Below are positions 1,136 to 61,557 of a stretch of 64,000 bases of DNA, piece after piece. The first letter of the stretch is position 1, and the number at the start of each line of letters is the position of its first letter. The notes beneath the pieces were generated by a model. It was not told the DNA's origin and made no database searches. It saw nothing but the letters and a program-made list of their open reading frames with translations. A program made the position numbers and the translations under genes. The DNA comes from Chara braunii (Eukaryota; Plantae; Charophyceae). Where the stretch lies: assembly GCA_003427395.1 (NCBI GenBank), contig BFEA01000029.1, forward strand, positions 3,754,366 through 3,818,365, in the 5' to 3' direction.

Positions 1136-18737
<17,602 letters not shown>

Positions 18738-24512: not shown

Positions 24513-24703
24513 TGTCAAACAGAGCTGCCCGGTAAACCGTTGGCAGAGATGGAGAAGAGGACAACAAACGAGGGGCTGTGAGTTTCACTCACTCATCAGG
24601 AGGCGGACCCCCCAACAGTCTGCAGAATTCCCTAACTGATTGCACTGTAAGTGATAATCCACCTTAACCCCGGCTGTGGTTAAGCATCAACGACTGCTCG
24701 ACA
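24513..24703 (-). repeat. Direct repeat A (191 bp) of a hammerhead-bearing element
   Basis: Aligns end-to-end with 36910-37116 (GAAGAGGACAACAAACGAGGGGCTGT, ACTCATCAGGAGGC, CACTGTAAGTGATAATCCACCTTAACCC). Ends are TGTCAA...TCGACA. Confidence 0.85.
24578..24623 (-). ncRNA. Type III hammerhead remnant in repeat A (GAAA box and 3' stem III deleted)
   Basis: Minus strand reads GCAGACUG-UU GGGG-GGUCCG-CCUC CUGAUGA GUGAG-UGAAA-CUCAC, followed by a deletion relative to repeat B. Confidence 0.6.
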
Positions 24704-24744
24704 ACGAATACCCTGATGCGGGCACCAACCACTGCCCGCGAGGC

Positions 24745-25685
24745 AGAAAGGGCAAATGGGTAACTGTTTCCTATACCCGACTGTACCCAGCTGCAACCGC
24801 CAGGTTACGGGTGGGGTTGCGTACCCCTTCCAAAGTGGGACTTGGGTATGGGAAGGGAGGGGCAGTGGCGGCGGAAAGCCCTGGGATGGGCGGCCGAAAA
24901 GAAAAATAAAATGGGTATGGGCAGATGCGAGTGGCAACAGAAAAAACTGGTATGGGTACGGGAGGGTAAAGGTTCCTATTGGGTAACCATGAAATACCTG
25001 GTGCCTACCCATTCCAAACCCCTCGTCCAGCCAACCCTGTCCCTCCACCCCCCTCTCCCGCCACCTCAAGTTATAGGCCCAATTTCTTTTCTACACCTGC
25101 CGTGTCGAAAGTTCCAAACAACCAAATGATTTTTTTTCCAGGCCGCTGCGCCGCTGCGTTGTTGGAAGTCAAGAGGTTCCCCGACTTCGAGCTGGGAGTG
25201 TGTCACGCTCCACTACTCACAAAATGCCAAGAAGAAAACAAAAAGATGGTGTATCATCCCATGTTCCAGCGGAAGATTCATTCTGATTTCCAACATTTCG
25301 TGAGTAGTGGAGCGAGGCCCATTGCCTCCCGCCCTGAGGCAGAGTTGGCAACCGAGATTTTTTAAAATACCTGTAACCAACCTAAGCGCACCCGCTTTGA
25401 AAACCATCTAACCATACCGACTATATACCTGGCCTATTGAACCTTTACCCATCTCTACCTGCTCCAAAAGAAAAAGATGTGTACCCATACCTGCTCTATC
25501 TTAACCTTTTCAGACTGTAACTGCCCATACCTGCCCATGTGCTTTTTTTAATTCCAAAACCACCCATGGCCACATAAACCTGAACCGTTTGTTAACCACT
25601 TGTATCCTATGCGACCCAGGTTTTTTTTTCATGTACCCACCCACAATTGTATGCACCCACACCCAACCGACCGCGCCCATCCCTC
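24745..25685. mobile_element. Probable decayed non-autonomous DNA transposon/MITE rich in GGGTA/TACCC motifs
   Basis: The left half is GGGTA(TGGG)-rich and the right half has the complementary CCCATACC/GAACCTTTACCC motifs. The right half resembles 61352-61475. Exact termini are not resolved. Confidence 0.4.
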
Positions 25686-26583
25686 GAGTCCTGACACATG
25701 CTGCTCCTGCCGATCACACCTGCAACGCCCTCTTGCCAGGTCACACTTACAACGCTAGCAATGGACGCTATGGAAGATGGACAATTACAGGTGGTAAGAC
25801 GACAATGAGTGGGGATGTGAACGACGAACAGCGACTCCGGGGCGTAGTGAGAACAGGGAATGGAAAGGGGTACCTGTGACGAAAATCAAAGCAGACTATC
25901 ACTCAACCAGACCAGATGGAGAACTCTACAGATTGTCCATCCACACTCCTTTTTTTTTTTTTTTTTTTTTCAAAAAGTCCTCCTGCCAGTGCTAGTGCTG
26001 CTGATATGAGCAGACACCACTAGCACCCAGGTGGAGGCTCCATCTATTGGTGGGGAGCATCACCTGCTGGAAACCGGGTCCAGCGTCCCATAATCGTCCA
26101 CAAAGAAAAGGAAGATGTTCAAGATCCGTGATTTTGAGACCTGCCAGCATTGATTGCCCTGTCTCCAGGGGGATTTATTGAACAGGTATGTGTGACCGAA
26201 ATCATGGTGATGTAGTCCTTGTAGCCCTTGTTATCCGTATCTCTTCACCCCCGGGAGGGGGTGCCAGATGTCCTCAATAAGCACTGATTCCTGAACAAGG
26301 AGTAGTAAAACTGTTTTATTTAGAAGAAAAACTCCCTGGGGGGCTCCAGGGGAGAGTTCCTTATATGAAAAAGAAAATGTAGGTAGAATGAGTTACTGGT
26401 TTATCTCAATTAAGACAGGATCTCGGTCAGGCAAAGGGCGTGGGGCGGGAAGGGGTCAGGGAAATCAGCAGGGGGGCGGAGTGGGAAAGAGGGTTCTATG
26501 TTCGTCCAGTCCTTAAAAAATTAAGTGATAGTCTCTCATTTCTTCCAGACTCCTCTGTCCCTCCCCCCCATCTCCACTCCATT

Positions 26584-29500
26584 CTACTTTTGCAATCCAT
26601 CCTTCCCCCCTTCCTCCCAGTCTGTACAAAAAGAAGTGATCCTTCTATTGACATCTCCTACCTGTTTAAAAAGATCTAGTTGTGATTTGGTGGCCCGCCA
26701 TCTTTGTGTGAGTTTGAAATGCAGTTGCTGCTGAATCTGTTTGGTAATTTCTGGCACCTCTACCCTCACTTTATCCATAGCCTGCGTACATCTCTGCCAC
26801 CAAAGTGCCCACAACACCGCACTCCTTCCAAGTTTGTACGTATTTTGTACGAAGGTCGTGGCCGCTGCTACGTGTGGCCAGTGGCCGGCCAGTATAGCTT
26901 GCCAAGTCCATGGCCAAGAAGATGTTGGTTCCATCTTTCTCCATATATGGTCCCAGCACCTCCATATGAATTGGGCGATCAGACATTGCAGGAAAATGTG
27001 TTCGATGGTTTCCGCCCTTTTGTGGAAGGGAAAAAGGCTCTGACATCGTTGGCATCATGGAAGCAGTAGGCCCTTTTGCTCTTAATTAGTGCGGTCGGTC
27101 AGCCAATCATTAGTTGGCAGACATCGGTGGGCGATTTGCCACTGCAGAGAAGTAATTTTCATAGGCCTTGCCTTCTGCTCCTGGAACCATTTGATCGGGG
27201 TTAGGAGAGAGCGATCCACGTTCAAGTGTCTGGCCCATCTATCGTTGATATCGTCCCTCAGCCGTTTCTTAGGTTTGAGCATTTTATAGGCTGATTTGAC
27301 TGACAAGTGGTGCAGGCTGATACAGCCTGCTTGGGGACCTGCCCTTTGCCGAGGAAGCTCCCAAGACCATTCTTCCGGGTCCAGAGCCAGGTCCTGGATT
27401 GATCTGAAAGGCTGGAACGCCACCTTCTACCCTTTTTCTTCAAGGATTCTCACTCTATACACGGAGTCTTTTTCTTTCCATACAAGAGGGTCTTGGCTAC
27501 CTTGGAGGGTGTTGGTTATAGTGATTGTGTAGTATCCGATTAGGACCGCCTGGGGTGAAACCATGTGTATTTGCCCTATCATCTGGGGAGGCTCCTTGCT
27601 GGCTACCCAGTCTCCTTCCTTTAAGGCGGGGCCTTGCTTGAGGGTTTGATACCATGCCAGCGGGATAGCTTCAACCAAATCATCCAAAATACTCCTTCAC
27701 GTGATGGCAATGTCGTAGAGTATCTTGCATTTGGTCGCCTGTTTTCCAGTCCTTTCTGTCCTCATCCCCAGAGATCCCCAACTCTGAGCACCCCTCTTTT
27801 AACCCAGCTCTTCTAGGGCAAAGCTGAGCTTGACATGATGCCACCAATTGAGTTAGTCACTCGTCTCTTGCCGAACAAAGGTTGTCGGTAGACTTCTTCC
27901 CAGCGATCGGGGTATGGTCTGTCTGAAAGCGGGAGTCTATGCAAGGTTTTCAATAGACAGGGCCAGAAGCTATCCAAAATTCGGTTGTCTCCGTCGAGTC
28001 CTTCCTTTGCTCGGGGAAGTTTCCATGGAATCGTCCAGAAACGGCCTCCAACCATGTCAAGGGGTGAGTGGATTGGGGGTTTCTGGGGCCAGTCGGGCCA
28101 GATGTTCTAGAGCCGGAACGCACCATGGACTCTGGGGGGCGAAAATGAGTTTTTTAATCCATTTAAGACATAGTGCTTGCACTTGTGTGGCTGGGTCAAT
28201 TATTCATAGGCCTCCCCGTGCCTTAGGTTGTATGATGGAATCCCATGCCACGCTGTTGATTACGTTATGGAGCTCGCCATCCCCCCTCCATAAGAAGGCG
28301 GTCACCTTTTTCTTTAGGTTTTTAAGGGCTGTTTTGCTTAGTGACCACAATAGTGATTTGTCCCATAAGGATGCGAAGATGACATTATTAATCACTAATG
28401 CGCAGACGAAAAGAGATGTGTGTTTGCTTCTCCAGTTTGCTAGTTTTTGCCTGGCTGGGTTGCCAATCCATTCGTCGTTGGTTGGTGGGCGTTCCTCGGC
28501 GGTCATGGTAACACCTAGGATTCTTACTGGGGATTCCAAGGGCATCCATTTGATTCTAGGTGACTCGGGGGGACGCCCCTCTTGGTAATAAATCCACCAC
28601 CCTTGAGTTTTACTTCCCCAGTTGACGGTCATGTCGGAAATCTTAGCAAATGTTTCCATCATATGCTGGATTTCCTCCATGTTGTTGTGTGTGGCTTCCG
28701 CCAGGATGGTGAGACCATCTGCAAAAAGAGAGCATACTGGGATAGCCTCCTCCGGGATGTGCGTGATTCAAATTTTGGTAATGTTTTTGTTTGCCCGGAG
28801 GTTGGTAGCAAGCGCTTCCATAATGACCAGAAAGAGGAAGGGAGCGATTGGGTCCCCTTGACGGACCGAGCGTTCCAGACGTAGGGGTGGTGTTATACAT
28901 CCGTTAACCTGGATGCAGGTGGTTGCATTCTGATGTAGGATCTGAATCCAGCGTCTGAAGTTCGGTCCAAAATTCATTTTCTCCAAGCATTTATCTAAGA
29001 ATAGTCAGTCTACATGGTCGTAGGCTTTTTCAAAGTCTATGAAGACTAGTGCCGCGTTCTGAGGAGAGTGTTTTGTGAGCTGAAGTACTTCGTGGATTAA
29101 AAGGATGTTCTCTTGAATGTTCCTATTCTCCATGAAGCCTGTTTGAGAGGGATGAATGATATCTTTCATTACCGGGATCATCCTGTTAGCTAAGGCCTTC
29201 GGCAACATTTTATAGATCACTATGAGCAGTGTGATAGGGCGGTAGTTCCAGATATCCATTTTGTCCCCCTTTTTGTATAGGAGGGTTAATACGCCCTGCC
29301 CCACCCTTTCTCCCATCTCTCCCGTGATCCATACTTCTTCGTAGAAGTCCATGATATCCTGATGTAGGAAATCCCATGTGATTTCCCAAAATTCTTAGGG
29401 GAAGCTGTCAATCCCTGGTGCTTTTTCCTCCTTCATTTGCAGGAGGGCGGTCCAGATTTCCTTCTTGGAGATCGGGGCTTCCAACGAATCGCGCTGTTCA

Positions 29501-30955
29501 GGTGTCAATGATTTTTCCATTAGTTCTAGAAAGTCTTTGAGTTGGCGATCGTGATCCTGTGGGTCAGATCTGTCTATGTGCAAGGTAAAGAGATCTTTGT
29601 AGAAATCGTAGATTATTTTGGCACACCTTGCTATTGAGATAGCCGGAGTGCCTCAATTGTTGTTCTTTTGCAACGAGGCCTCGCCAGTTTAAAGAAGCGG
29701 GCATCCATTACTCCTTCGGTTGAGAGGTTGGACAGTCTTGCCCTGATCTGGGCTTCTTGCCAACGATACTGTGCATGTTTCAAAAGCTGAGCTTTTAGAT
29801 TTTGTATTTGGGATTGTGATTCCTCTGGGTTTGAATCTTGCCCTAATTCCTGCCCTTGCGAAAAGCGTTTCTGTTCAGCATCCATGAGACTTTGCATTAT
29901 CAGGATTTCCTGTTGGTGTCGCTGTGCGGCTATATGCTTGGAATATTCGTTGCATTTTTTCGCCAAAAAAAACAATCCATTGTTGAGCCAATAAATTAGA
30001 GATTCTTGTTGGGGACTTTGGTCCTTCCAGAAGGCCCAGGCCGGCTGTAGGAACTTTTGGAAGGATTTGAGATAGAGCAGAGAAGTGTTAAGTTTATAAT
30101 AGCTAGCCCCCTGGTCTGGCCGTTTGCGGAAGGTCCAGCCTGCCACACACATCCTGTGATCCAGGCCTGGGTGCGGGCTAGGTGGCAAATATGGCCGTCA
30201 AGGTTAGTCCTCCACTCAAGTCCTCTGAAACCAGAATAAGATCGATTTTCGATTTTGACAGTCTTTCGGGATTATTATTGCGTAAGCAAGTAAAAGCCTT
30301 TTCGATCTGATGGCCTCGTCTGAAGGTGTCAAAAAGTGAGAGGGAAGCGCACAAATCCCTTAAAATCCCCTCATCCTCTTCTGCGTTGCGTGCGGTGGTA
30401 GGGGGGATTTTTCATCGGTCCAGCCACCTGTCGGGTGCGGCGTTGAAATCCCCTGCTATTATTACCGGGATATCGGGGATAAGGATCGTTTCGATCTTTT
30501 CGAAGAAAACTCTTCTTTCCTGGGGGGTGTTAGGGGCGTAAATGGAAACAATGCATATTATTTCTAATTCCAGCATGCCCAACACTAACCCACCTTCCTT
30601 CCACCCTGTCTTGTTCCCAATCGAGCACTTCGAGGCGAGATTCAGGTGGGATCCATATGGCCACCCCTGCACTTCCTGGAGAAGGGGCAAAGGCCTGGTA
30701 TTTTAGAAAGGGCTTGACTTGCTTATGTGCCCTGTGATGATCCGGTGAGTCCATTAAGTGGGTTTCCTGGATGCAAATCACATCCGGCCACGTTCTTCCC
30801 CCCACCCCCCGCATCAAGTCCCACAACGNATTGTTTTTTTCAGGGTTGCGTNAGGCTAGCCCATTCACATTGATTGATCGAATATCCNGGTCTGCCTGNT
30901 GAAGGGTGTGTTTCCACTTTTGGTTCTTACCATACACCACTTTCACCCAATCCAT
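26584..30955 (-). pseudogene. LINE ORF2: AP endonuclease + reverse transcriptase + C-terminal Cys/His (zf-RVT) region, multiple stops and frameshifts
   Basis: APE motifs SINVNGL, DVICIQETH, SIYAPN, IAGDFNA. RT motifs KAPGID, NYRPITLL, QTGF, IDFEKAYDHVD, VRQGDP; FADD is mutated to FADG near 28715. C-terminal WQIAHRCLPT...ETIEHIFLQC. Confidence 0.93.
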
Positions 30956-30982
30956 TTTTATCTTGTGTGATTCTCCTTCTCA

Positions 30983-33764
30983 CTATTTTGATCGGAATGG
31001 TGACCTATCTTGTATATCCCAATCTATTCCCTTGTTGATGATGTTCTTTCGGAGTATTGTGCATATACAGGTAAGCAGGTCATCTGTGGACCAAATATTA
31101 CTAGGCTGAATTTTTAGTTGCTGGGTGTCCAGGAGCATGTTGTGTGTGAGCCATTGCAGCCACACTTCTTTGTTGTCTTCAAATCTTACGTATATGTCCT
31201 TATAGGTCATCTTGAGGTTCTCCGAAGAGACGATGATGGTGGCCATTGCCCCTGGTTCGTATTGATTGGTGACAAAATCTGTGATCTCCTGGACACGTAG
31301 CGTCCCTTCCCTCTTCATGCGTCATCTGTGCAGGGTCATCCCTCCGTAGGTCGGGGCGTACGAGTCTTCTGAGTCAGCCGGTGATATACCCAATTCCCAT
31401 TTCCCGGCCCTCTTTTTGATGGGGAGGACCAAGACTTTGTCCCCTTTGGGTAAGCGTATGTGGTACATTCCTTTTTCAATGAGATGACGTATCCTTACTC
31501 GTTTCGAGAGACCTGCTTTATCTGTATTGAGTATCTCTTTCTCCTTCCGTTGTTCGGGTATTTCAGCGTGCGCTATTGGCTGGGTACGAAGCGGGGGAGG
31601 GGGGACATCAGTGTCTTTAGCCTGGTCAGGCGTTTCGTTGGCCCGTTCTGATGTTTCAGGTTGGATCGGTGCTCTTGTTGTTTTTGTTGTTTCGGGAGGC
31701 TGAAATTTTTGGTGAACAATATTCCAGATTCTGTATAANGCTGATTGCCAGTCCAGGTTCGGGGGCAGGCCTTGCTCTAAGGCTTGTTTCAAGCTGGGGC
31801 TTTCGTCTAGCAAGGAGAATAACTGTACGTAAGCCTCGTCCCAGTACACTTCTGATTGGCCTGAATATAATGACCGAAGGTGAGTAATTAGCCAATCTGC
31901 CAGACCCTGTATCTTAGTCTCGGTATCTCCGTCTCCTTGAGACCCCCAGGCCTCAGGCATGCTATCCATCATCTCCTCATCGGAAGAGGCCCCCAGGGCT
32001 TCCCAGTCCATTGGCTGGGGTCCGAAAGCTTGAGAGAATGGGTCTGTTTTTGAGGGAGATTCTCCTATGGCAGTCTTGGTTTCAGTATCAGACAGGATGG
32101 TGTTAGGAGGTGGGTCTTTTGGGCTGGCGTCCACTACTGCGGCCGGTTGTAAGATCCTTTGTTGGTTCTCCACTCTTCCTTTTCCTTTCTCCTTTCCTCC
32201 TTCCACCACCCCATCTTTTCTCTCCGTGTTTTTTACCCGTACCTGAGTTTTTTTTCCTCTTTCCCACTCCGTAGGGTTGCTTTGCCCTGATTCTCCGGGC
32301 CCCTTCTCCACTAGGAGCTTGCCCCCGTTTTCTGGAGAGTTTGCAATAGCCTGGAATCTGTTTTCTAAACTCTTGGGATTGCCTCCTTTGCTCAGGTTTT
32401 GTGGCTTATCATTCTTGCTTGAGTGTGCTTGTTTCTTTGGGGATGGGGAATGTTATAGTTCTCCCGTTTCTGTCGGGGTAATGAAGTCATGAGGTCTGGG
32501 TTCAGGATGCTGCTCAGTCCTGGGTTCAGGATGTTGTTCAGCTTGTGACTGTGTTGGCTTCTCAGGGACCACGGGGGGGGGGTTGGTGGCCCTGTCCATA
32601 TGCACTTCCACCGGTTTGGGGGGGATCCATTGCTCGGGGGGTTTGGTATCCCATTCCACCGCCTCTCCTTTTTCCCACTCCCAGCCCCTCACTCCTCCTT
32701 CCTATCGCGGCTCATCCACGTATACCCAACCCTCATGACCGGCGTCGACCGTCCTCCACCAAGTGTCTTTGAGCGGGTCCCGGTTCAGGCGGCTAATGAT
32801 TCTGATCTTCTTGGCCGGGTGGTGGGGGCAGTCGGATTCCGTTGGGAGATGTTCGTAAGCCTGGCATTTAAAACACCAGACTCTCGTTTTGTGTGACGTG
32901 TGTATTATGAAGTCTCGTCCACCTATTCGGAAGAGGATCATATCGTCAATGGTGAAGATGTGACCCTTTGGAAGGTCAAGGACTATCATAAGGTAGTCAT
33001 CCCTTGGGGTCACATGGGGCGGGAAAGGGTCAATGAAGTCCACAATATCATATTTCTGGGCTAGCTCTTGCACAAAAGCCCCTTGGATTTCAATGGGCAC
33101 ATGAGGAAATTCCACCCAATAATGATCGGACATTAATTGGTCCCTCTTTTCCTCTGGTTGTTGCTGCTTTGGGGGAGACCAGGGGAAGATCCGGACCTCT
33201 GACCGTCCACATGGTATGCTCCGCCATGTGTCCATGATTCTTTTGTCCGAATCGAACATGCAGATCACTGTGACCTCCGTGGACGAGATGGGTTGAATCA
33301 GGAAGAAGTCTCGCACCCCTTCCTCAGATCCTTTGAGGGTCGCAAGTCTTTTCTTGATCCACCCCACCTTGTCGTTGGTCGTTTTGTAGGCTGCGTCATC
33401 GTAAAAGACCCACGTGCTCGCGTAGTGAGTATATATAGCATCCCTTTCCCTTATCGCTTCTCCTGGAAGTGCTTTCACCCTCTGCTTTTTCCCCCCTTGA
33501 CTGATTATCCTATCCTCCGGTTTTGCTATAAATTTCGCTAGGAAAAAGGCTGATGCTGTGGTCAGATTGTCCGAAGGGATTTCTAGATTGCTCTCCCCTT
33601 CTCCACCTCTTCCGACTGACAAGGTCTGGCCTGAGTAAACTCTTTTTAGCTTGTCGGCCCATGTGGGCCTGTCAGTGACTTCTCTTCCCTCCTGCAGACT
33701 TTGCACCTCCTTCAGCAATACTGTAGGGGAGGGGGGGGGGGCAGGAGGATGATGCTTCAGCCAT
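30983..33764 (-). pseudogene. LINE ORF1 (~925 codons) with zinc knuckle
   Basis: The ORFs 33772-32702, 32692-32453, 32311-31322 and 31318-30983 share one frame, separated by single stops. N-terminal TWADKLK motif and CFKCQAYEHLPTESDC knuckle. Likely start accATGg at 33764 with a homopolymer frameshift just after it. Confidence 0.78.
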
Positions 33765-33984
33765 GGTAGCATCCTTTTTCCTCCCTTCCTCTCGCCGGGG
33801 CCGCCAATCAGACGAGTGGTGCCTCATGGCGCCATGGTGCCAGGTCATCCGTGTCTGCCCTCTCCCTCTCCCCTTTCTGGCTTCATTTTTGAGACTCGCT
33901 ATGTGTTCTGTGGGTGGTATAAAGAGGCTGACAAAACTAATGGCTAAAGTGGCAGTGTTATGGCCAGGTTGGCAGTCTAGGACT

Positions 33985-35530
33985 CGATCAGGGGGGGATG
34001 GATGTAAACAAGAAGGGATGGATGTAGGACGGGGATGCAGATGGTCAGGAACGAATCGGGAGGAGAAGGGGGGTCGGGACAGGAAGACGAAATGGTCGGG
34101 GGAGGATCAGGAGGGGGTGGGCAGATGGGCAGGGAGGATGTGAGCAGATCGGGACTGAGGAGAAGCAGGGGGGTCGGGACGGGATCAGGATGGGCGGATC
34201 TGAGCAGGTCGGGACTGAGGAGAGGCGGAGGGGTCGGGACAAGGGGAGGCAGATCGGGACAGTAGCGGGGGGGAATCAGCGGGTAGACGGAGTCGGGGCC
34301 GGAGACGAAATGGTTAGGACTTGATCAGGGGGGGATGGATGTAGACGAGAAGGGATGGATGTAGGACGGGGATGCAGATGGTCAAGAACGATCGGGAGGA
34401 GAAGGGGGGTCAGGACAGGAAAACGAAATGGTCGGGGGGGATCGGGGGGGGGATCAGGATGGGCAGATGGGCAGGGAGGATGTGAGCAGATCGGGACTGA
34501 GGAGAAGCGGGGGGTTNNNNNNNNNNNNNNNNNNNNNNNNNNNNNNNNNNNNNNNNNNNNNNNNNNNNNNNNNNNNNNNNNNNNNNNNNNNNNNNNNNNN
34601 NNNNNNNNNNNNNNNNNNNNNNNNNNNNNNNNNNNNNNNNNNNNNNNNNNNNNNNNNNNNNNNNNNNNNNNNNNNNNNNNNNNNNNNNNNNNNNNNNNNN
34701 NNNNNNNNNNNNNNNNNNNNNNNNNNNNNNNNNNNNNNNNNNNNNNNNNNNNNNNNNNNNNNNNNNNNNNNNNNNNNNNNNNNNNNNNNNNNNNNNNNNN
34801 NNNNNNNNNNNNNNNNNNNNNNNNNNNNNNNNNNNNNNNNNNNNNNNNNNNNNNNNNNNNNNNNNNNNNNNNNNNNNNNNNNNNNNNNNNNNNNNNNNNN
34901 NNNNNNNNNNNNNNNNNNNNNNNNNNNNNNNNNNNNNNNNNNNNNNNNNNNNNNNNNNNNNNNNNNNNNNNNNNNNNNNNNNNNNNNNNNNNNNNNNNNN
35001 NNNNNNNNNNNNNNNNNNNNNNNNNNNNNNNNNNNNNNNNNNNNNNNNNNNNNNNNNNNNNNNNNNNNNNNNNNNNNNNNNNNNNNNNNNNNNNNNNNNN
35101 NNNNNNNNNNNNNNNNNNNNNNNNNNNNNNNNNNNNNNNNNNNNNNNNNNNNNNNNNNNNNNNNNNNNNNNNNNNNNNNNNNNNNNNNNNNNNNNNNNNN
35201 NNNNNNNNNNNNNNNNNNNNNNNNNNNNNNNNNNNNNNNNNNNNNNNNNNNNNNNNNNNNNNNNNNNNNNNNNNNNNNNNNNNNNNNNNNNNNNNNNNNN
35301 NNNNNNNNNNNNNNNNNNNNNNNNNNNNNNNNNNNNNNNNNNNNNNNNNNNNNNNNNNNNNNNNNNNNNNNNNNNNNNNNNNNNNNNNNNNGACGAGGGG
35401 GAGCAAATCGGGACGGGGTGGGTACTCAGTGGGAGATAAGCTAGATCAGGACGGGGGGGGCGGGACGAGGGGGAGCAGATCGGGACGGGGCTTGGGGGGC
35501 AATCAATGGGTAGACGGGGTCGAGGTCGGG
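33985..35530. repeat. G-rich tandem repeats (GATCGGGAC/GGGGG units, ~340-bp higher-order duplication) in the LINE 5' leader, interrupted by an assembly gap
   Basis: GATCAGGGGGGGATGGATGTA...GAAGGGATGGATGTAGGACGGGGATGCAGATGGTC recurs near 33986 and 34323. Confidence 0.8.
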
Positions 35531-36909
35531 GGCGGGTAATCAGTGGGTAAGCGGAATCAAGGTTGGGAGATCGTGGATAGAAGGGAGCGGGCCAGAGACG
35601 GGAATCATGAGAGGGATCGGGAGGAAAGACGTGGGGACAGAATGGGATAGGAGAGGGGGGACCGCGAGGATCGGGTGGGTGCAGGGTTGAGGGGAGAGGC
35701 GGGATGGGGGAAGGGTCTGTTTAGGAGAGTTGCGCACCTCCGAGCTCCTTCGCTTCCTTCTTCGGGGGATTATGACCCCCGAGGCCCCAAAGGAAGTCGC
35801 CGGTTGCCCGGGGCCTTCGCCGCTATCGCTCGCCTCTTCACTGCCATCGTCTGCGCCCTTGCCGCTGTTACTATCGCCTGCTCCTTCCTCGTTGTCCTTG
35901 ATGCCTGCTTTTTTTTTGCCTCCTCCTCCTCCTTTCTACTCCCCCCTTGTTACCTCGCCGCTATCGCTCGCCCCTTCGTTGCTATCTCCTGCTCCCTCAC
36001 CGCTGTTATTATCGCTCGCGCTATTGCTCGCTCCTTTCGTCGTTGTCCCTGATGCCATTATCGCTCGCTGCTATTGCTCGCTCCTTTCGTCGTTGTCCCT
36101 AATGCCTACTCATACCTTGCCTCCTCCTTCTCTGGTGGTCGTCCGTAGCCGCTGTCGCCTCAGCTACTATCGATCTCCCCTTAGCCACCTACCCCTCCTG
36201 CCGCCCTGCTCCTGTTGTCTCCCATCCGCTGATCGACTCACCATCACCATGCTTGTAGCTGTTGTCGTGCTGTCGTGGCCTACCGTCTCCGTGACTCCCC
36301 AATTTGGCTCGTGTTGCCTCCCGTTCACTGCCCGAGCCTTGCCGTCTTCGTGTTTCCTGCTCTATTACTTGATCCGATGCTCGCTGTTCATCCACGCTCT
36401 TCCGTGGGCGCCGCACTTTCCCCGAAGATGCTTCCAGGTACCTGGTCTACATGGTCGATTCTGCCCAACCCAGGACCAGCATCGTTAGTGGGGCTCTCCT
36501 GTCTACACCACGAGGAGAAGTCGTCGGTCTCCTTCCTTGGCTATGGCGACCTGAAAATTTCCTCTGTCTTTTTTTCGCCATCTCAACTGTCGACGATTGC
36601 CGCTTCTCCCAAATGCAGACCGAATAGCGCGTTATCGATTGCTACGAGCCCGTCGTAGCGCTACCGCGAACCGACGCTCAAACCCTTCCCGGTCCAGAGA
36701 CCGGTGCTCCCTGTCCGTCCACACTCCATCACAAGCAACCAAAACACTCATGAAACAAAGACAGATCTGTCACAGCCAAAAAATACACTCCAAACATGCC
36801 GTTGGCACTAAAGGCACAACATGGCCACGTCGTGACGGCCCCGCCCACTGCCGCTCAACATGAACAGATGAAAATCATAGCAGGGTGCTAGCGAAGTCGT
36901 GGGATATAT

Positions 36910-37116
36910 AGTCAAATGGAGCTGACCGATGAAAGGCAGATAGAAAGGGGAAGAGGACAACAAACGAGGGGCTGTAACAAACTGATTCGTCGGAGTTTCG
37001 CCGACTCATCAGGAGGCTAAACCCTCAACAATCTTTAGAATCCCCTAATTGATTACACTGTAAGTGATAATCCACCTTAACCCTGGTTGTGGTTAAGTAT
37101 CAATGAGTACTTGACA
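36910..37116 (-). repeat. Direct repeat B (207 bp) of the hammerhead-bearing element
   Basis: Homologous to 24513-24703. Ends are AGTCAA...TTGACA, and a (TA)n tract follows shortly after. Confidence 0.85.
36977..37036 (-). ncRNA. Type III hammerhead ribozyme motif, near-complete (GAAA mutated to GAAU)
   Basis: Minus strand reads AGAUUG-UU^GAGG-GUUUAG-CCUC CUGAUGA GUCGG-CGAAACU-CCGAC GAAU CAGUUUGU. All three stems form; predicted GUU cleavage between 37027 and 37026. Confidence 0.78.
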
Positions 37117-37943
37117 ATTGATATATATATATTTATTTATATATATATACACATCAAACATCGCTATGAAACAGTTGAAATGAGATGCAGCGGCTTACGC
37201 TCCTGAAGTGAGTTTCAACTGCCACATTTCAAGTACCAATCAGGTCATTCAACACTTTTAAGTGGAAAGACCTTAAACGGTTGAAATGACCTTAAGGGGC
37301 TGAAGCTTTTGGAATCGTTTTGAGGTGTACTCATATAAACACTGAACACTCATTTGAAACCATATCGATGACCTCTAGTGATTGAGCATCTTAATACCTA
37401 TTTCAATTGCCCCTACATAAACATCATTCGTCAATATGAAAATGTTGAAAGCAGCTGAAGTGGAAACTTCTAAAAACAATTTCGATTTTTGAAATACGGT
37501 TCGATGAGCTATAAAGCAGATATTAAAATGATTAGCACAAATACTACAATTGGTTTTAGCCAAAAGGCCAAAAAACATTTTCATTTGCAACTATCTCTGA
37601 TGTATGAATAAGGGTAATTTAAACCGCTTTTAAAAGGTTGAACCGCCTTAGATAACTTCAATAAATTTCATATGGGATATCTGAAATCGTTGAAATGACT
37701 TGACTTGGCTGAAATTTATAAAACCGCTTTCCAAACACCTATTTGAAACGATAGTGATGACCTCTTGTGATTGAGCCTTATAAAACCGGTTTCGACTGCC
37801 CTTACATAAACATCATTCATCAAACTGTTGAAAGGACATGGAGTGGTTGAAACTTCTAAATGCAATTTCAATTGAATCTATCTTTGATGTTTGGATGATT
37901 ACGATTAAACTATCAATACCTTTCTTGGGTAAAAGAACGCCCT

Positions 37944-38247
37944 TTGAACATGTTGGAAGGGCGTTTTGCAGGCGCAACACAACTTCAAGCTGGAAAACCG
38001 TGAGCTATGCAGTACAATATTGTCTTCTGTGCAAAACCATGAAAATAAAACAAAAGAAAAAAAGGTTATGGCGAGTAGAAAAAACATTTCAATTCTTGAA
38101 CATGTTGGAAGGGCGTTTTGCAGGCGCAACACAGCTTCAAGCTGGAAAACCGTGAGCTAGGCAGTACAATATTGTCTTTTGTGCAAAACCATGAAAATAA
38201 AACAAAAGAAAAAAAGGTTATGGCGTGTAGAAAAAACATTCCAATTC
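37944..38247 (+). repeat. 152-bp tandem duplication inside an AT-rich region of recurring AAAC(C/G)GTT/TGAAATGAC motifs (37150-38800)
   Basis: TTGAACATGTTGGAAGGGCGTTTTGCAGGCGCAACAC...AAAAAACATT occurs at 37944 and 38096. Confidence 0.88.
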
Positions 38248-39133
38248 CTTTGGTGCAAACAAAAACAACAACATTTTGGTATGTGGAAATGACATTGCGA
38301 TTCGTTTGACCCCAACCGCGCGACCAAGATCACCCCTCATCTTTTTTTTTTTTTTTTTTTTTTTCCCTCAAAGCAGCCACAACTCTTTTTTTTACCCGCC
38401 CTTCGACGACATTGTGCACTGGTCGCGGACTGGTTCGACAGGGGCTGCTCAAAGATACAGGCGGTTTAAACCTTTTTTAGAAGGTTTAACCACCGTAGGT
38501 AATTTCAACAAGTTTCAAATGGGGATATCTGAAACTGCTGAATGACTTGACGTGACCAAAGCTTCTGAAACTGTTATCAAGTCTCGTCATCAAAATACCC
38601 AATACTCGTTTAAAACTGTGACGATGAGGTGAAGTGTCTAAGCCTTCTAAAACGGTTTTCAAATCCCTCGATCCAAACCTATAACAACCGTCTACAATCG
38701 TAACGATGACCTGAAATGTTTGAAGATTTTGAAACCAACTTCAAATCCCTTCATCCAAGCGTCTAAGATCGGTTTAAAACTATCATACCGACCTAAGATT
38801 ATTGGGAATATAAAGGGACCTGAAAATATATACATACGTTAACCATGGGTGGAGTTAGCGGGTGAAGTTCGCTTCCGTGCTTTGCCATGGACAAAATTGG
38901 GGTGACCATGTCATAAGGACAATAAAAGATGAAGGAGGGGCATTGAAGGAATAGGGGTGAACCTGCACACATGCCTTTTGGGTTTAGCATGCAAGGCGGT
39001 TTAGCATACACCACCCCATCTCTGGAAGGATGCTCCAATCCCAAGTCCCTAGGGTAACACATTAATTGCAGTGGGGATATTTTTCAATTATCTTCATCGT
39101 AAAGTCAACCTGTGGATTAAAAAAAAAAAAAAA

Positions 39134-48685: not shown

Positions 48686-48697
48686 TGGTATCAGAGC
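48686..48697 (+). promoter_or_regulatory. Primer-binding site complementary to initiator tRNA-Met
   Basis: TGGTATCAGAGC 2 nt after the 5' LTR. Confidence 0.93.
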
Positions 48698-50214
48698 GAG
48701 ATTGGAATTGGAGCACTGAGGGTTGACTGCACTGAGGCATCTTCTTTATCCTGGCGATATACTGGCGAGAGTTTCATGGCGATTCATCTTCCCCAATCCT
48801 GATTCAGCAGGGAAGAAGACTTTCAGCGGTGAATTCAAGTGTTAAGTGGCTGCACTGAACAAGCGCACTGAGCCTGTTAGGGCGCTTGTCAGGGAGTGGC
48901 GAGTACAGGGCTAATTCGCCATAGCCAACCCTGAGGGTAATACTGCGACTTACCCCAGAGTGGTGAATTACCCCTGAGGACATCAGGGAACCCTGAGCGG
49001 CATCATCCCTGGGTGGCGCTAATAGAGATTGATGCAGTATATCAATCTCCAGGAGGAATAACCCCATCTGGGGCTATTTTTAGCATCAGTGGCTACCTGC
49101 CACTGTGGCGAGATATTTTGGAGTTGGCGAATTGGGTGCCACAGGACCAGATACAGGGTATCTGGAGTGAAGGGGTGCAGCGCCACAGGATCCTGAAGAG
49201 GATCAACAATTTTGAGGAGGTTATGTGCGTAAAATTGTCTGGGAGAAGTTCTGGAGGAAATTGGCGAGATAAGGGTTTCATCTGCCGTAGCCAGATCTTC
49301 ATCATCACCTGCAAGATTCTCTACAAGTGAGTCCGTTCCATGCACCTACCTGTATTGCGATCCAGATGGTAGTAGTTTAGTGAAAGATAAGGGTCGATCT
49401 GTTTGTCAGTGACTGGATATGAAAATTGCAGACTGCATAACAGCCATAGCCACCTCTTCCCCTACCTCTCTCTGCTCATATCTCATTATCTGTTGACTCT
49501 TTCTAGTCCAAATTTGTCCTGCGACAGCTATACTGTATTGCGATTGTTCTGGGATGATCAAACAGCGAATTCTGTACTAGAAAAGTAGTGATACTGGGAA
49601 TTGCTGTTTTGCGCAGAGTCTATTTTTAGCCTGTGCTATCTAAGGTCAGTCATAACTTCAATTCTGTCCGTCAGAATTCAGTTCTGTGAGTCCCCAGTAA
49701 ATCGCAAATTGAAAACATTCAGTACTGTCAAATCGCAGATTTGGATTTCGAGTATTTCACTGGATACAGTGGAAAGTGTGATTCGCCATACCCTAGGGTA
49801 TGGCCGCCAGAGTCATCAGGGTCTGGAATTGGGTCTGAGTCAGGTTACAGGGTATCTGTCTACTTCGCTTGTTGTATTTGATCTCTCTTTGTCTGTACTA
49901 ACCATTTCTATCGTTCCCACTGATTACTCTTGTTTTCTAGTGGGTCTCTGGAAGACTAGTGGAGTGACTGTGTTGCTTCCAGTGTGGTCCAGGGTCAGTA
50001 AAAGGAAATCGTGTGACTGATTTTGCTGGACTTACAGTTTGTCTGACACCTGACCCCAGAGACACCCTTCTAATCCCAAACCGTTGATTTTCTACTCACC
50101 CACCTACTCCAGTGTTGGGTGCTGCAGCGATTCTAGGGTATCTGCAGGAATCTGTGTATCGCTGCAATTCTTTCTGCTGTTATTTTATTTTTGGGTTTTA
50201 TTTGAACTGGGAAA

Positions 50215-51838
50215 ATGTCCCAACAGGGGGATGAGCAGCAGCCACATGTGCAGGTTGTGGTGAAGGCAGAAGGTGAACAACCTTCTGCCTCCACTGCACC
50301 CCCTCCACCTCTGACTGCTACTCAAAAGGCTGAAGAAGGAGGCAGAGGAACAACTTAGACTACAACATGCCAGAGTGGCTGAATTGGAACGGCTGGAGAC
50401 TGCTGAGCTGGAGGCTGCAACAGATCACTCCAGGAGAGAGTATCTGTTGCAGCAGCTAGACAAGTCTCTCGCTGATGATCGGTGCTCCCAGGTCACCAAG
50501 CACATGGCTGAGATGATCCTGTTGGAGCACAAGATCACCAGCTCCCAGTTTACAAACTGGGATGATCGCTTTGTACGGCTGGAGCGTCGGGTTGACGAGC
50601 TGTCAGCTCAACAGTCCAAGATCCTGGACTCTATCCAGGGCTTGTCTGCTCAGCTGGCAGCCGCCAAGCTGATTACTCCTCAGCTCCCTCTGCTGAAATC
50701 CAAAACCTTTCCTCCTCCTTCACCACCTCCTTCCCCTCTTACATCCCATGGGGGATCTGTACATTCTTCCCGGTCATCTACTCCTTCCCAAAAGGCCTCA
50801 GCAAAGGCCACCTATGCTGCTGTGACTGCAGCGGACAGAGGTCCCAAGATCCCTGCTCCCAACAAGTTCAGGGGCGATGACCCCAAGACTGATGTTCGGG
50901 ACTGGGCTGCTGGGACCAAAGCCTACTTGAGGGGCTTTGTCTGTGCAGAACAGACCAAGGTGGCAACTGTTTTGGGGCTACTGGAAAGGCCTGCACTGAA
51001 GTGGGCCACTTCAACTTCCAGCAGTCTGCAACAGTCCATGGAGGACTGGGCCTTTGGGTTGGGGGTAGACAGACTTCTGTAGGCCCTGGAGGACCGGTTT
51101 GCAAACAAGGAGCGGGCCCGCAAGGCTGCTGACAGGATTGATCGCCTGGGACAGCAGCGGTACAGCGACACCCTACAGGCCTTGTTTGCTGAGTTCGAGC
51201 AACTCACCTCCACCCCTGGAGTGGTCATGGCACCTGATGATATGCTGATCAGTTTTTGCAGGGCAGCGCCTGAGAAGTTTGTTGTTGCACTCTACAGCGC
51301 TGGGTATAAGGACTGGAGGTCCTTTGGTCGTGCAACCCTGGAAATGAAGGCTAAGCTCCATGTCCAGGCCCCAACCTCTGACAGGAGGAAGGGTGCCTTC
51401 CCTAGAGGCAACAGAAGGGGAAAGGCAACCCTTACTCATGTGGGATCTGCCTCAAGATCAGATACCGATTCACAGCCTGATGTGCCTTCAGGTGGGATCG
51501 GATCTGCTGCTGAGACAAATGTTGCAGCAGTAGTGACTCAGTCTGTGTTGGGAGCTCTGCAAGCGCAAAAAAAGTATTCCCCTTCCACAGCCTCAGCCTC
51601 TAATAAGGGGAAGGATAAGGGACGTCGTCCTTCCTCTTCCCTGCGCCCTAATTTGCCTAGAGACGTCCGCATGCCAGCTGACCCTCTCAATCCCTCCTCG
51701 CTCCCCTGGCATGACCTCAAGATCCAGGAGGGAGTCTGGAGAAGAAGAAAGGAGAAGGGGGTCTTCCTGAGATGTGAGGGACAACACTTCTTAAAGGACT
51801 GCCCTTACATGCCAAGCCCGGGTCAGTCAAAAAACTGA
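50215..51838 (+). pseudogene. gag: gag (coiled-coil, Ty3 capsid, degenerate zinc knuckle); one frameshift near 50335 and a TAG at 51080
   Basis: PKIPAPNKFRGDD..DVRDW capsid motif, LEDRF, xLRCEGQHFLKDC knuckle. Confidence 0.87.
51829..51835 (+). promoter_or_regulatory. -1 programmed ribosomal frameshift slippery site A-AAA-AAC
   Basis: X-XXY-YYZ heptamer in gag frame directly before the gag TGA. The -1 frame is open into the protease, and a GC-rich stem follows. Confidence 0.75.
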
Positions 51839-54800
51839 AACAGACCCTGGGGACTGCAGTTCCCCCCAGTGCTGCACCTTCATCTGCCCAGGTAGGTGAA
51901 TCTGCAGCTGTTTCAGTTGAGGCTGTTTGTGATGATGTGTGTTTGGGGACTGCGCGGGCAGCATCCTTCTGCTATGAGGATCCTGACCCGGATCAGGACC
52001 CGGGGCAGGATGAGCTTCAGTCCATTGCTGCCTTCTTCTTCCATTTGAGAGAGCAGAAGAAGAAGGGCCTGCCTGAACTCATCATGCTTCGGCCACTGAT
52101 CAACCGCACCAGGATCACTGGGCTTTTGGACTGTGGAGCCACCCGAAACTTCATATCTCCCAGTGCAGTCAAAAAACTGCATCCGGGTATGAAAGTTCAG
52201 CAGTTGCAGCAGCCGCTGCAGGTGCGGATTCGTGACTCTACAGTGATCAGCATCAGGGAAAAAGTCAAAGGCATTCCGGTGACCTTTGACACTGTTGGGA
52301 AAGTCAGACACAGTCTGAACTTTTACGTCTTCCCTGAGCTGCCCTTTGAGTTGGTGTTCTCCATGCAGTGGTTGAGGGCAGTCAACCCTATGATAGACTG
52401 GCAGATTCCTAGAGTTGAGCTACCAGGCCGTCAGGGTGTGTATCAGCAGTGCATGATTGCTGCTGAACATCACCTTAAGACCTCCTGCTACTGCCTGAGA
52501 GCGAGGAAGTTTCATGCTCTCTCTCGCCAGTACCACCCTGAGCGTCTGTTCATTGCTTTGGTCAAGCAAACAGATGCTCCCCCTGTTTCCTGTCCTCCTG
52601 AGATACAACAGGTAGTAGATCAGTATGCTGATCTGATGCAGGAGCCCTTTGGGTTAGCCAACCGGCCAACCAAGCATCACATCGAGCTGCTGCCTGGAGC
52701 GGTCCCTCCTAAGGGTCGCGTCTACAGGATGTCCCCTGCTGAGCTTGAGGAGCTCAGAAAGCAGCTTGAGACCCTGAAGCAACGGCAAGGGCTGGATCAG
52801 TCCCAGCACATCTGAGTTCAGTGCACCTGTTCTCTTTGTACCCAAAGAGAACGGCGAGTTCAGGATGTGCATTGACTACAGGGGTCTCAACAAGATCACT
52901 AGGAAGAGTACTGAGCCACTTCCTAGGATCGATGACCTCCTAGACATGGCGCAGAGCTGCACAGTGTTCAGCAAAGTCGACCTCAAATCTGGCTACCACC
53001 AGATTGAGATGGCAGAGGAGGATGTCTATAGGACAGCCTTCAAGACCAGGTATGGGACTTACGAGTTCCTGGTCATGCCATTTGGACTTTGTAATGCCCC
53101 GGGCACCTTCCAGACTGAGATGCACCGCATCTTCAGGCCTTACCTGTACAAGTTTATGGTTGTCTACCTGGATGATATCCCGGTATTCAGCAAGACTGTC
53201 AGGGAACATGCGAAGCACTTGGCTCTAGTTCTTCAATCGTTACGCGACAGCCAATACAAGATCAACAGAGAGAAGTCCTCTTTTGGAGTTCCCTCTGTCA
53301 TCTATCTGGGTCACGTAATCTCTGGAGATGGTCTGGCTCCTGAAGCAGTCAAGATTGCTGCTATTCAGGAGTGGCCCCAGCCACAGACAGTGAGGGATGT
53401 CCGGTCCTTTATGGGTTTGACCTCCTACTACAGAAAGTTTATCAAGAACTTTCCTGCAGTGCCGCACCCCTGACCAACCTAACAAAGAAGGACACTCCCT
53501 TTCTTTGGTCCCTCCACTGTCAGCTAGCCTTCACACGACTCAAGAAGGCCTTCACTCGTGCGCCTGTCCTGAAGTTACCTGACCCCACTCTGCCATTTAT
53601 CCTGACCACTGACGCCAGTCAGTATGGCATTGGGGCAGTACTTCAGCAGGATGATGGGAATGGTCTACGACCTGTAGAGTTTATGAGTAAGAAGATCAAG
53701 ACTCAAAAGCTCCAGGACTCTACCTACGAGAAAGAGTTCTATGCTCTTATCTGTGCCCTGAAACATTGGAAACACTTTCTCCTGGGCAGGCACTTCACGA
53801 TCTTTTCAGATCACTCCACCCTACAGTGGATGAAGTCCCAGGGAGAGTTGAACGATAAACTGACACGGTACATTCAGTTCATAGACATGTTTGACTTTGA
53901 ACTGGAACACAAGAAGGGCAGCTACAACAAGGTGGCAGATGCCCTCTCTCGTAGGCCTGACTCTTTTGCTATGATCTCCTCTACTCACTCCTTTAGAGAG
54001 GAGACACGTCAGACCATTGCTCGTCTACTGCCTCAGGACGAGACTTTTGGACCCATTGTCAGGAATCTGCAAGCCGATCCTAACTCTGAATCAGGCTATG
54101 CTCTGAGTTCAGACCTGTTGTACACCTACAGCAGAGGTGAGGAGCGCTTGTGCATTCCCCAGCACCAGCGGCTCAAGACACTGCTGCTATCAGAGTGTCA
54201 TGATGTCCGTGGACAGTTCGGGTTCCTAAAGTCTTATGCAGCCCTGTCGCAGCGCTTCTTCTGAAAGGAGATGCGGAGTGAGATGTGGCGTTATGTGGAC
54301 ACCTGTGAGCTCTGCCAAAGGAACAAGGTTCAGCGTAAACCTCCTTTGGGACTGCTGAAACTCTTACCCATACCTGATGGCCCTGCCCAATCTGTGTCGA
54401 TAGACTTCACAGATCTAGACAAGACCACCCCTCGTGGCATGCGTCAGGTTATGGTCTGCGTGGACAGGTTCTCCAAATACGCAGAGTTCATCCCCTTGCC
54501 AGAGGTAGCTAGGGTACCGGNTGTGAGAGCANCCTTCTCTGAGAGGNGGNTCACACACCATGGACCGCCCACCTCTATCGTCAGTGATCGTGACCCCAGA
54601 TTTTGCAGCGATGAGTGGCAGTCCTACTGCAAGGACTATTTGCACTCACGTCTGGACATGACCTCTGGTCATCATCCTGAAGCCAATGGATTGGCTGAGG
54701 TGATGAACCAAGTCTTGTTCCAGCTACTGCGTCCTGTCATCTCTCCAGATCAACAGGACTGGGATCTTCACTTAGCGAGAGCACAGCTCATGTATAACAT

Positions 54801-55494
54801 GTCTGTCCACTCCTCGACAGGCTTCAGTCCCTACCGGTTACACTGGGGACGTGAACCGCGCCAGCCTCTCGATGATATCATCGACAAGGCTAAGCCTGAT
54901 CTGACGCCAGGCACCGCAGAGTTCGCCAGACGCTATCGTCTGGATGTGGAAAGAGCCCGCGCGAACTTGTTCAAGGCCCAAAAGACCATGATTGAACAAG
55001 CCAATCGCCACAGGCGGCCTTACCCCATCCGTCTTGGTGATCATGTCTGGGTGGCCAGTTCTGAGCTGTCGAGGGAGGAGGATATCTCCCCGAAGCTGCT
55101 GCCACGCTACTTGGGTCCGTGGCAGGTCTTAGATACAGTGGGCACTGACCCTTTCGGCCCGTCGTATGTTATCGACGTCCCGCTGCATCTACNCACCTAT
55201 CCGGTCTTCCATGCATCCAAGNTGCTGCCTTTCANGCCTGCTGATGCATTCCCTGACCGGCCCCCTCAATGGGNCCCACNAATCCCTGGTAAGGGATATG
55301 ATGTGGTGGCCATTGAGGATGAGTGGGGCACAGGCCCCNACCNNCAGTATCTTGTNAGGTTCGCTTTCCAGCCCCCTTCTGAGAACCGGTGGTTCTACAG
55401 AAGAGACCTGATCAAGACAGCAAAGTCTGTTGTACTGCGCTATGAGGCGGCTCAGAAGAGTGACCTTCGCCGTTCGCCTCGTCTGCACCACTAG
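51829..55494 (+). pseudogene. pol: pol: aspartic protease, RT, RNase H, integrase, chromodomain; frameshifts near 52785 and 53460, TGA at 54262
   Basis: LLDCGATRNFI; CIDYRGLN, DLKSGYHQI, MPFGLCNAP, YLDD; TDASQYGIGAVL, DHSTL, ADALSR; CELC, SIDF, SDRD, GP(W/F) module VFHAS; YDVVAI...QYLxRF...ENRW. Confidence 0.95.
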
Positions 55495-55513
55495 CTCGGA
55501 GGTCCTCGCTCCC

Positions 55514-59600: not shown

Positions 59601-61557
59601 TTATCATAAGGTATAGCTTTGATTAGGGTGGCTCATAGCATAAAATACTATGAATGAAGGGACCTCTTATAAAATTCAGTCTGGTATGATTCAAGCTTAT
59701 GAGCAAGGACTTGGAGCCTATTGCAAGGCCCGATTGCTCACTAAGTCAGTAGAGAAGACCTTCTAAAAGTCAAATAACATTTAAGGATCATAATATCTTA
59801 GAAGCCGTAACTCCAATTACCAGTGTTGGAGTTTTTTATTATGTCATTGTAAAGCGTACAACTTGTGACAAAGGCACGACAACTGTTCACGTGCTTGTAA
59901 CTAGGTTTCTTAATAAAGGGGAATACAACACAAGACATTATATATGAACGTGTTGATTAGAAGCCAAACTATCTTGTTTGTTGGAGTATCATTGTAAGTT
60001 ATATCGAACAAGAGAGGACTTTATTGAAACAACAACAAAAAAAAACTAGCTCGAGTTTGGTACCTAAGGTATATAGGAGAATTATAAGCCTGACAATTCG
60101 AAGGGATTTTTCGATGGGAAGGATTGTTTGTCTATCATCAATGCTACGCTAAGGAGACAGAACTGACAGACAAGTATTGGTGAACATGATATTTTTGTGA
60201 TACAAGTCAGCCAAGGGAGGAGTGGAATCTGAGTGTTGAAGATCGAGGTTTGGAAAAAAAAATAGCCCACGTGAGACAGAGGTCGAGGGATTGTTGAAGA
60301 CCTTGAAATCCTTCACTCGGGCATAGGTGTTTCCCTATGAAAAAGGGAAGTAGGAACTGATAAAGAGCGGTTGGGAGCGAGGGTGATTGTATGCTCTAAC
60401 ACTCCGATTCGTTGAATTGGACGAATATGATGTAATGATATATTTGCGCAAAGAGCAAAAGAGAACTTTACCGGAGGCGCTGGAAGTGGACAATTGATTT
60501 CCTGTGGCGAGAGAAGGAGAGGATCGAAAAGAAAGGGAAAAATATATTTGAAGCACCTATGCCACCACTTCCAAAGGACTGCCGAGTCCACCCTTGCCCG
60601 ACTTCAAGTTAGTGAAGAACGACTGGCACCCAGGTGGACTTCTCGTTGCGAGTAAAAGGGTCTTATGGTTGTTAGTTTTCTATAATGACGATAGCAACAA
60701 GGACGACTGAGGCTTTGACAAAGATCATGATAGGTGGTGTTTTGCCTTACGCGATTGAATTGGGTGTGACCTGTGAGCATGATTCGATGACGCTATCTCC
60801 TTATGGTCACGTTCTTAAAGAAAAACGACTATGATGTGAGGGTGTATGTATCCGCTAAGACGAGGAGAGGAATCGACTATGTTGCCTGTTAGGTAGCAAA
60901 AACCGATTATATACTGAAAAAGAGACAATTATTGAAACAATAAGAGAAAAATGTGATGTAGTATATTTTGCCCAAGGACTTAGAAAGATTCCTAAGTCCC
61001 CCGGTGCTAAGTAGTTTCTCTGACGAAAAAGATTGAAGACCGATCTTGAATGTCGTTCTGAGGAACCAAGTGTGATGAACAACACCGAGTTTCAAATGTC
61101 GACAAACATCTGTCTTTTTGGCGCTAGGGAGAACTCTTGTTTCAAGATATATCTAGACGAGCTATGGGTTACTATGATCGGTGTTGTAAGAGGTTGCAAA
61201 TCCTAACTCAGACGAAATGACGAGCTTGAGATGGTCAAGTATTATGAGGGCAACACCATTCGAGGTGATCACTAATTAAACTTGGATTGGGCATAAGAGC
61301 TTTGGTGGTAATAGGGTGATGGTCATAATCCGCAATTGAAACTTTTAGGAATACATGTACCCAACCTAATCACACCCTATTTGAAAACCAACCACCCATA
61401 CCCATTGTATACCTGGCCTACCAGACCTTTACCAATCCCTACCTTCTCCAAAAGAAAAAAATGTGTAGTATTGTGTACCTATACTATATATTACAATCTA
61501 GCTATGCATTTGTGCTTCATAAATTAGTTGAACCAAATCGTACCTTTTCTCAATTAT

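Follow-up and report, generated by a model that had tools for sequence, protein, structure and literature searches.

Canonical hammerhead ribozymes have been described in the streptophyte alga Chara braunii within two subclades of Chlamys-type Penelope-like elements, one of which has the motif at its 3′ end (Craig et al. 2021, PMC8557442). Known features of Penelope-like elements are a pseudo-long terminal repeat (pseudo-LTR) that stems from a 5′-truncated upstream copy, head-to-tail junctions, microsatellite targets and the lack of a clear target site duplication (TSD) (PMC8557442), and animal retrozymes have been reported as derived from Penelope pseudo-LTRs (Li et al. 2026 preprint, bioRxiv 10.64898/2026.07.22.740005). 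The role of the hammerhead in Penelope-like elements is still called unclear (PMC8557442, PMC7761336). The locus analysed here lies in a 64,000-nt window of the C. braunii genome (contig BFEA01000029.1, positions 3,754,366 to 3,818,365), in which two direct repeats, A (24513-24703) and B (36910-37116), both contain hammerhead sequence and enclose non-coding DNA that is split by a long interspersed nuclear element (LINE). Its closest described counterparts are the hammerhead-bearing Penelope-like elements of the same alga, and the locus is a variant of known hammerhead retroelements, not a new system. An initial annotation of the window had considered the family possibly undescribed in this lineage, a suggestion that goes too far in view of the published accounts of hammerheads in C. 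braunii, of pseudo-LTR partial tandems and of microsatellite targeting (PMC8557442).

With a probability of roughly 55%, A and B descend, as decayed copies, from the 3′ module (~210 nt) of a non-coding C. braunii retroelement that is abundant and transcribed, and were deposited as a Penelope-like pseudo-LTR partial tandem of a non-autonomous element. On the minus strand, this module begins with a short extension, continues with a type III hammerhead and closes with a tail whose last letters are ...UUUGAC(G/A)(AU)n, and the locus runs in the same sense from (AT)n through B, ATATAT, a core, a stretch termed X and A into TA-rich flank. In such an arrangement, B would be the 5′-truncated upstream unit serving as pseudo-LTR, the core would be the start of the next unit, later split by the LINE, and A would be the 3′ module of that unit. 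The repeats, initially described as bounded by short inverted ends, are better read as pseudo-LTRs of a head-to-tail partial tandem than as LTRs with such ends.

With the hammerhead-bearing Chlamys-type elements of C. braunii (Chlamys-2_cBra, PLE-X; PMC8557442) and their pseudo-LTRs, the present family has in common the organism, a canonical hammerhead in the 3′ terminal region, partial tandems with an LTR-mimicking truncated copy, frequent 5′ truncation, insertion into microsatellites and the lack of a clear TSD. Unlike Chlamys-type elements, the unit is only about 0.4-1.6 kb long and has no open reading frame (ORF), be it for a GIY-YIG nuclease, a reverse transcriptase (RT) or a gag-like knuckle, and would be at most a non-autonomous derivative. 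In addition, the preference reported for Chlamys is one for (CA)n and (C)n (PMC8557442), whereas the present subfamily resides in (TA)n, the comparison being one with the published description. Metazoan non-LTR retrozymes (Cervera and de la Pena 2020, PMC7229834; Li et al. 2026) likewise consist of non-coding head-to-tail units of a few hundred nucleotides with one hammerhead each, have neither a primer binding site (PBS) nor a polypurine tract (PPT), form a compactly folding monomer and have a suspected Penelope-like partner. They are known from animals, and their hammerheads are of type I and often weak in helix III; the hammerhead of the present family, in a streptophyte alga, is of type III, and its helix III has 8 bp. 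Non-LTR retrozymes also accumulate as circular RNA, whereas in the present family, covered here by DNA and oligo-dT RNA runs, such circles would be a prediction. A parallel of another kind comes from the hepatitis delta virus (HDV)-like ribozymes of R2, L1Tc and RTE (cited in PMC7761336), in which, as would be the case here, the RNA template owes its 5′ end to self-cleavage and copies start at or near the cleavage site. Unlike those elements, the present family has a hammerhead in place of an HDV-like ribozyme, and it lies in the 3′ module, where it would act on the next tandem unit.

Hammerheads of the two repeats and of their family

Repeats A and B are co-oriented, as the initial annotation had stated, with a mean column identity of 82% in the alignment, and two probes of 26-27 nt from the repeat match at A and B only within the window, where chance would give no match. 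The type III hammerhead of B (36977-37036, minus strand) is recognised by its layout, its fold, the majority letters of the family and a descriptor scan. On the minus strand, the 5′ arm of helix III (37036-37028) is followed by U at 37027, stem I (37026-37013), CUGAUGA (37012-37006), stem II (37005-36989), GAAU (36988-36985) and the 3′ arm of helix III (36984-36977), with the predicted cleavage point between 37027 and 37026. The class is type III, as loops close stems I and II and helix III is left open. This layout agrees exactly with the minus-strand reading given in the initial annotation, including the GAAU that occupies the place of the expected GAAA and inactivates B (36985).

The Rfam Hammerhead_3 model (RF00008) scores B at 22.1 bits (E = 0.027), below its gathering score of 48.5, and finds no match in A even in permissive mode. 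At the gathering score, no hammerhead is found in the window or in eight other Chara loci, and the permissive mode yields B alone. A descriptor scan for stem I, CUGANGA, stem II and GAA together, over ~198 kb and both strands, returns B as the sole full motif, and the fold of B alone has a z-score of only -1.75. In A, a remnant at 24580-24624 (minus strand), identified by sequence and alignment, keeps stem I, CUGAUGA and a stem II-like hairpin, while a 17-nt deletion, visible as a gap in A in the alignment, removed GAAA and the 3′ arm of helix III. Of the hammerhead elements initially assigned to both repeats, the complete layout is thus found in B, and A has lost part of it; the verdict that this copy is dead holds for both, through GAAU in B and the deletion in A. 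The differently paired stem II of A (GUGAG/CUCAC) is present as a hairpin, and it is explicable as a by-product of the deletion and one substitution: the letters brought together by the deletion pair with the ancestral 5′ strand at four of five positions, and one substitution completes the stem. As evidence of covariation it would be weak, and as solid covariation it was rejected, since the 17-nt deletion by itself leaves four of the five pairs.

A third, older fragment at 13414-13462 (plus strand), found by repeat search, motif comparison and descriptor scan, has CUGAUGA, a wobble-paired stem II and GAAA, and its similarity to A and B starts at about the cleavage site. At another C. braunii locus (L007:15414-15481), a diverged relative has GUC, the triplet from which the GUU of B may, according to the initial annotation, have decayed, and GAAA together with a mutated CAGAUGA. 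It is bordered by (CA)n/poly(A) on one side and by (TTG)n on the other (L007:15330-15580), a hint that subfamilies differ in their microsatellite tails. Among metagenome contigs of the JGI, an exact-pattern scan for the ribozyme gave no match.

The family as a whole was approached through contigs of two C. braunii DNA runs and raw reads of two oligo-dT RNA runs, which were compared with 36500-37350 at 80% likeness. Single-copy flanks have a DNA depth of 5-23, while 36935-37108 of B reaches 0.2-1.6 million in the two DNA runs, with the maximum on the bins that cover the ribozyme (36964-37021) and an abrupt fall to background at 37109. The majority letters of the family differ from B at 36985, 36976, 37000, 37019 and 37035. 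The plus-strand majority letter at 36985 is T, by which GAAU becomes GAAA, the motif on whose presence in a family consensus the initial annotation had staked the ribozyme. In A, all six positions that it covers (37000, 37019, 37035, 37049, 37084 and 37098) have the majority letter. When B is given the majority letters over a 65-nt stretch, the minimum-energy fold is a hammerhead three-way junction with a helix III of ~8 bp. The catalytic core CUGAUGA...GAAA, a GUU triplet of the NUH type, closed helices I and II and an open helix III are therefore combined in the family-majority letters and not in the local copies. Judged by these letters, the hammerhead is a real, formerly selected feature at the level of the family, and the initial claim of a genuine ribozyme motif can be upheld at that level.

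Transcription and the starting points of copies are also reflected in these runs. In both oligo-dT RNA runs, the core and the ribozyme part are covered with the same strand bias of 3.5-9:1. Numerous contigs and reads end their match at 37018-37022, where AT-rich sequence takes over, and across the cleavage site the DNA depth decreases about threefold. In combination with the similarity limit of the fragment at 13414-13462, these break-offs suggest that most copies have their start on the cleavage site or a few nucleotides beyond it. About two thirds of the copies appear to start there, the remainder forming head-to-tail units.

The 3′ end of the element is fixed. Copy A is the 3′ module of the element, with extension, hammerhead remnant and tail, and on the basis of sequence inspection, alignment and family reads it occupies 24513-24735 (minus strand). 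In the minus sense, A ends in ...TTTGACA followed by ATATA, adjoining the TA-rich flank, and a solo, 5′-truncated copy at another C. braunii locus (L005:17850-17903) has TA on both sides, so that in both cases the true 3′ end of the element is ...TTTGAC(A/G) and then (AT)n. Rightward, comparison of reads and contigs extends the family homology of A to at least 24730. Since other copies of the family continue past 37103 as A does, into 24704-24730, the right end of A at 24703 is not a terminus; loose ends of reads and contigs behind 37103 and before 36950 match A as well. Copy B is the same 3′ module (36910-37123, minus strand), delimited by alignment, family reads and inspection of its flanks. 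It is 5′-truncated in the minus sense at ~37123, where (AT)14 begins, and this microsatellite (37121-37149), noted on inspection of the sequence, adjoins B as the insertion target. Leftward of B, the family sequence runs on into the core. The inverted ends TGTCAA...TYGACA of the initial annotation are not supported by these limits: they match at five of six positions only (B begins with AGTCAA), and family homology passes both the right end of A and the limits of B. As functional termini, inverted ends were accordingly rejected.

Core, head-to-tail unit and LINE insertion

The core consists of 250 nt that adjoin B and are co-amplified with the ribozyme part. Its right part (36728-36909, minus strand), delimited by depth and junctions, is as abundant as the ribozyme part, with a depth of up to 5.6e5 at 36732-36818, and its left part (25882-25949, minus strand) is defined by loose ends behind 37082 and before 36711. 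The initial annotation had set the core at 25686-25949 plus 36728-36909, which is right in part, for 25882-25949 and 36728-36909, the co-amplified sequence. In other copies, the loose ends of contigs and reads join 37082 directly to 25882 onwards, and contigs of high depth span the joint that links the tail of B to the core by way of ATATAT, where C is the majority letter at 36910 (48 contigs). Together, the joint of 37082 with 25882 and the joint of tail, ATATAT and core define a head-to-tail unit of 423 nt, which is seen in its junctions and not as an end-to-end array. The rebuilt 423-nt monomer folds better than its shuffles, with z-scores of -2.6 as a circle and -3.1 as a linear molecule, values that are only suggestive. 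ORF inspection and protein searches found no RT or nuclease ORF and no GIY-YIG in the unit, which at ~0.4-1.6 kb and with no such ORF is, from its sequence, to be classed as non-autonomous. The initial view of the family as a non-coding, ribozyme-based retroelement is supported.

Stretch X (24736-25881) is non-coding by repeat and ORF inspection and a protein probe; its origin is uncertain, and a long form of the element may have it as its body. It contains an unrelated fragment resembling a miniature inverted-repeat transposable element (MITE) at 25348-25485, which is 80% identical to 61332-61467.

The core is interrupted by a later LINE (25950-36711, minus strand), identified by sequence and domain inspection, with APE endonuclease, RVT_1 and broken ORFs. 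Its poly(A) lies at 25950-25970, and a 16-bp target duplication with one mismatch surrounds it (25934-25949 and 36712-36727). The empty site is spanned by RNA reads from other copies, and a loose end before 36711 matches 25905-25933. When the LINE is removed, the spacing between A and B is 1,428 bp, which agrees with the ~1.4 kb of the initial annotation. A run of N at 34517-35391 lies inside the G-rich tandem repeats of the LINE. The assembly join over this run is sound, because the same G-rich units occur on both sides, the target duplication is present and reads span the empty site; only the length of the gap is uncertain, and no reading frame relies on it. ORFs that read through the N run were rejected as artefacts. 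The 5′ region of the LINE (33978-36130) is a long array of G-rich repeat units of 50-340 nt, which brings the LINE to ~10.8 kb and probably caused the assembly gap. An exact look-up of the ORF1 of the LINE returned no record.

A probable pseudo-LTR partial tandem and its rivals

A life cycle that would produce such copies can be proposed in four steps. The element would be transcribed; the hammerhead would cut the transcript, so that many of the units copied back would start at the cleavage site or a few nucleotides past it; a borrowed enzyme would use a nick in a (TA)n microsatellite to reverse-transcribe the (UA)n-ended RNA; and the copies would often be placed head to tail. The borrowed enzyme would most likely be that of a Chlamys-type Penelope-like element. 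Self-cleavage in vivo, target-primed reverse transcription and the Penelope-like partner are the presumed parts of this scheme. The siting of copies is consistent with it: (AT)14 is found at 37121-37149, TA around the solo copy, AT-rich sequence at the loose ends, and (CA)n and (TTG)n beside the diverged relative. In addition, the order of the locus is that of a partial tandem, with B truncated at ~37123 and followed by the core and, at the far end, A, and with the hammerhead module in both repeats.

Several observations weigh against this pseudo-LTR reading. Depth, roughly 10^4-10^5 times that of single-copy sequence, and the copies seen directly point to a family of the order of 10^4-10^5 copies, but summed contig depth does not equal copy number, and direct sightings amount to only five copies in 277 kb. 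The strandedness of the RNA libraries is not known, and the expressed strand is thus a deduction; in the RNA runs, the cleavage site shows no accumulation of read ends. Many copies apparently start 4-8 nt beyond the cleavage site and not exactly on it. A further 213 kb of C. braunii DNA, in loci reached through Gypsy and LINE genes, contained one tail fragment and one diverged relative of the family, and both X and the core were absent from it. A protein probe over the extension of A and X found no relatives, although short ORFs in repeats are rarely called and the probe is accordingly weak. Finally, A and B share no derived letters relative to the family majority at the six scorable positions, and their descent from one insertion is accordingly presumed. 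An RNA-specific sign of circles, in the form of back-joints, was likewise not seen in the oligo-dT short-read runs.

Since A and B lack shared derived variants, independent stacking remains a serious rival, if on balance an unlikely one. Under this explanation, B with the core, and A with its own upstream sequence, entered one TA-rich site separately, as members of one (TA)n-seeking family or of two, and their common orientation and 1.4-kb spacing are accidental. It is in keeping with (TA)n as the target of the family, with the differing stem II sequences of A and B and with the unrelated repeat material inside X. However, TA-type sequence occurs only at the two outer ends of the composite and at the recurrent joint of tail and core, not at the boundary between core and X. 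Furthermore, an independent insertion of B and core would need to stop exactly where the short form changes from core to ribozyme part, and the core and ribozyme part are transcribed from the same strand.

A satellite-like amplification, in which unequal crossing-over or segmental duplication would be the chief means of spread of the ~423-nt unit and the hammerhead would travel as a passenger with no part in mobility, is improbable. Head-to-tail joints and very high depth would be expected of it, but not dispersed copies with variable 5′ truncation and a 3′ end fixed in microsatellites at unrelated loci, nor a depth peak on the ribozyme whose core the majority letters preserve.

Still less probable is a classical plant LTR retrozyme, moved by Ty3/Gypsy machinery from a circular RNA primed by tRNA-Met. 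Plant LTR retrozymes (Cervera et al. 2016, PMC4918200) also belong to the green lineage and also have a type III hammerhead in each of two direct repeats around a non-coding centre, and Gypsy elements are abundant in the genome, with one in the window. Unlike them, the present locus has no tRNA-Met PBS in or beside the unit at up to two mismatches, the sole exact match in the window being at 48686, at the start of the Gypsy region; a search for tRNA-like sequence found none. Inspection of repeats and flanks revealed no PPT, no 4-bp TSD and none of the TG...CA ends of Gypsy-like LTRs, so that this candidate was rejected on PBS, PPT and TSD alike, as the initial annotation had done. The repeats are also shorter (~210 bp against 300-400 bp), and solo copies are 5′-truncated and flanked by (TA)n tails, which is a signature of target-primed reverse transcription. 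A chance resemblance, in which a repeat merely contains CUGAUGA and GAA, would account for the sub-threshold Rfam score of B, the unmatched A and the fold z-score of -1.75, but it is equally improbable given that majority letters give back GAAA and an 8-bp helix III, that depth is greatest on the motif, that the relative at L007:15414-15481 has GUC and GAAA, and that 198 kb contain one full motif only on both strands.

Neighbouring features and significance of the family

Next to the repeats, a truncated U2 small nuclear RNA (snRNA)-like sequence lies at 37455-37579 (minus strand; Rfam U2, 57.6 bits, with the 3′ half of the model missing). It belongs to a repeat-rich block (37345-38250) with 90-nt repeats at 37345 and 37734 and a twofold tandem of 152 nt at 37944-38247, and may be a U2-derived retropseudogene or short interspersed nuclear element. 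The Ty3/Gypsy retrotransposon of the window (~48686-55500, plus strand) encodes protease, RVT_1, RNase H and integrase, each in a broken ORF of its own, and has an exact tRNA-Met PBS at 48686-48697. Among 120 listed protein relatives of a Gypsy fragment in the window, about 100 are annotated as C. braunii, as are the best relatives of the LINE ORF1, and the loci reached through them belong to assembly GCA_003427395.1. On another C. braunii scaffold, a full-length U6 snRNA gene was found (L002:6322-6422, plus strand; Rfam, 107 bits).

The locus itself is a dead, LINE-split copy, and its value lies in the pseudo-LTR arrangement and the co-amplified core; better copies lie elsewhere in the genome. 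A tentative further step, which goes beyond the partial tandem, is that C. braunii has true non-LTR retrozymes with type III hammerheads, whose ~423-nt units undergo self-cleavage and circularisation before a Chlamys-type Penelope-like RT copies them into (TA)n. If this were true, no such system would have been known before outside animals, plant LTR retrozymes would be linked to the Penelope-derived retrozymes of animals, and genomic copies that start near the cleavage site would be direct evidence for the service that the hammerhead renders to Penelope-like elements. The family would also give a tractable case of a ribozyme that defines the RNA copied back into the genome, and it would extend retrozyme-like non-autonomous elements to the streptophyte algae.

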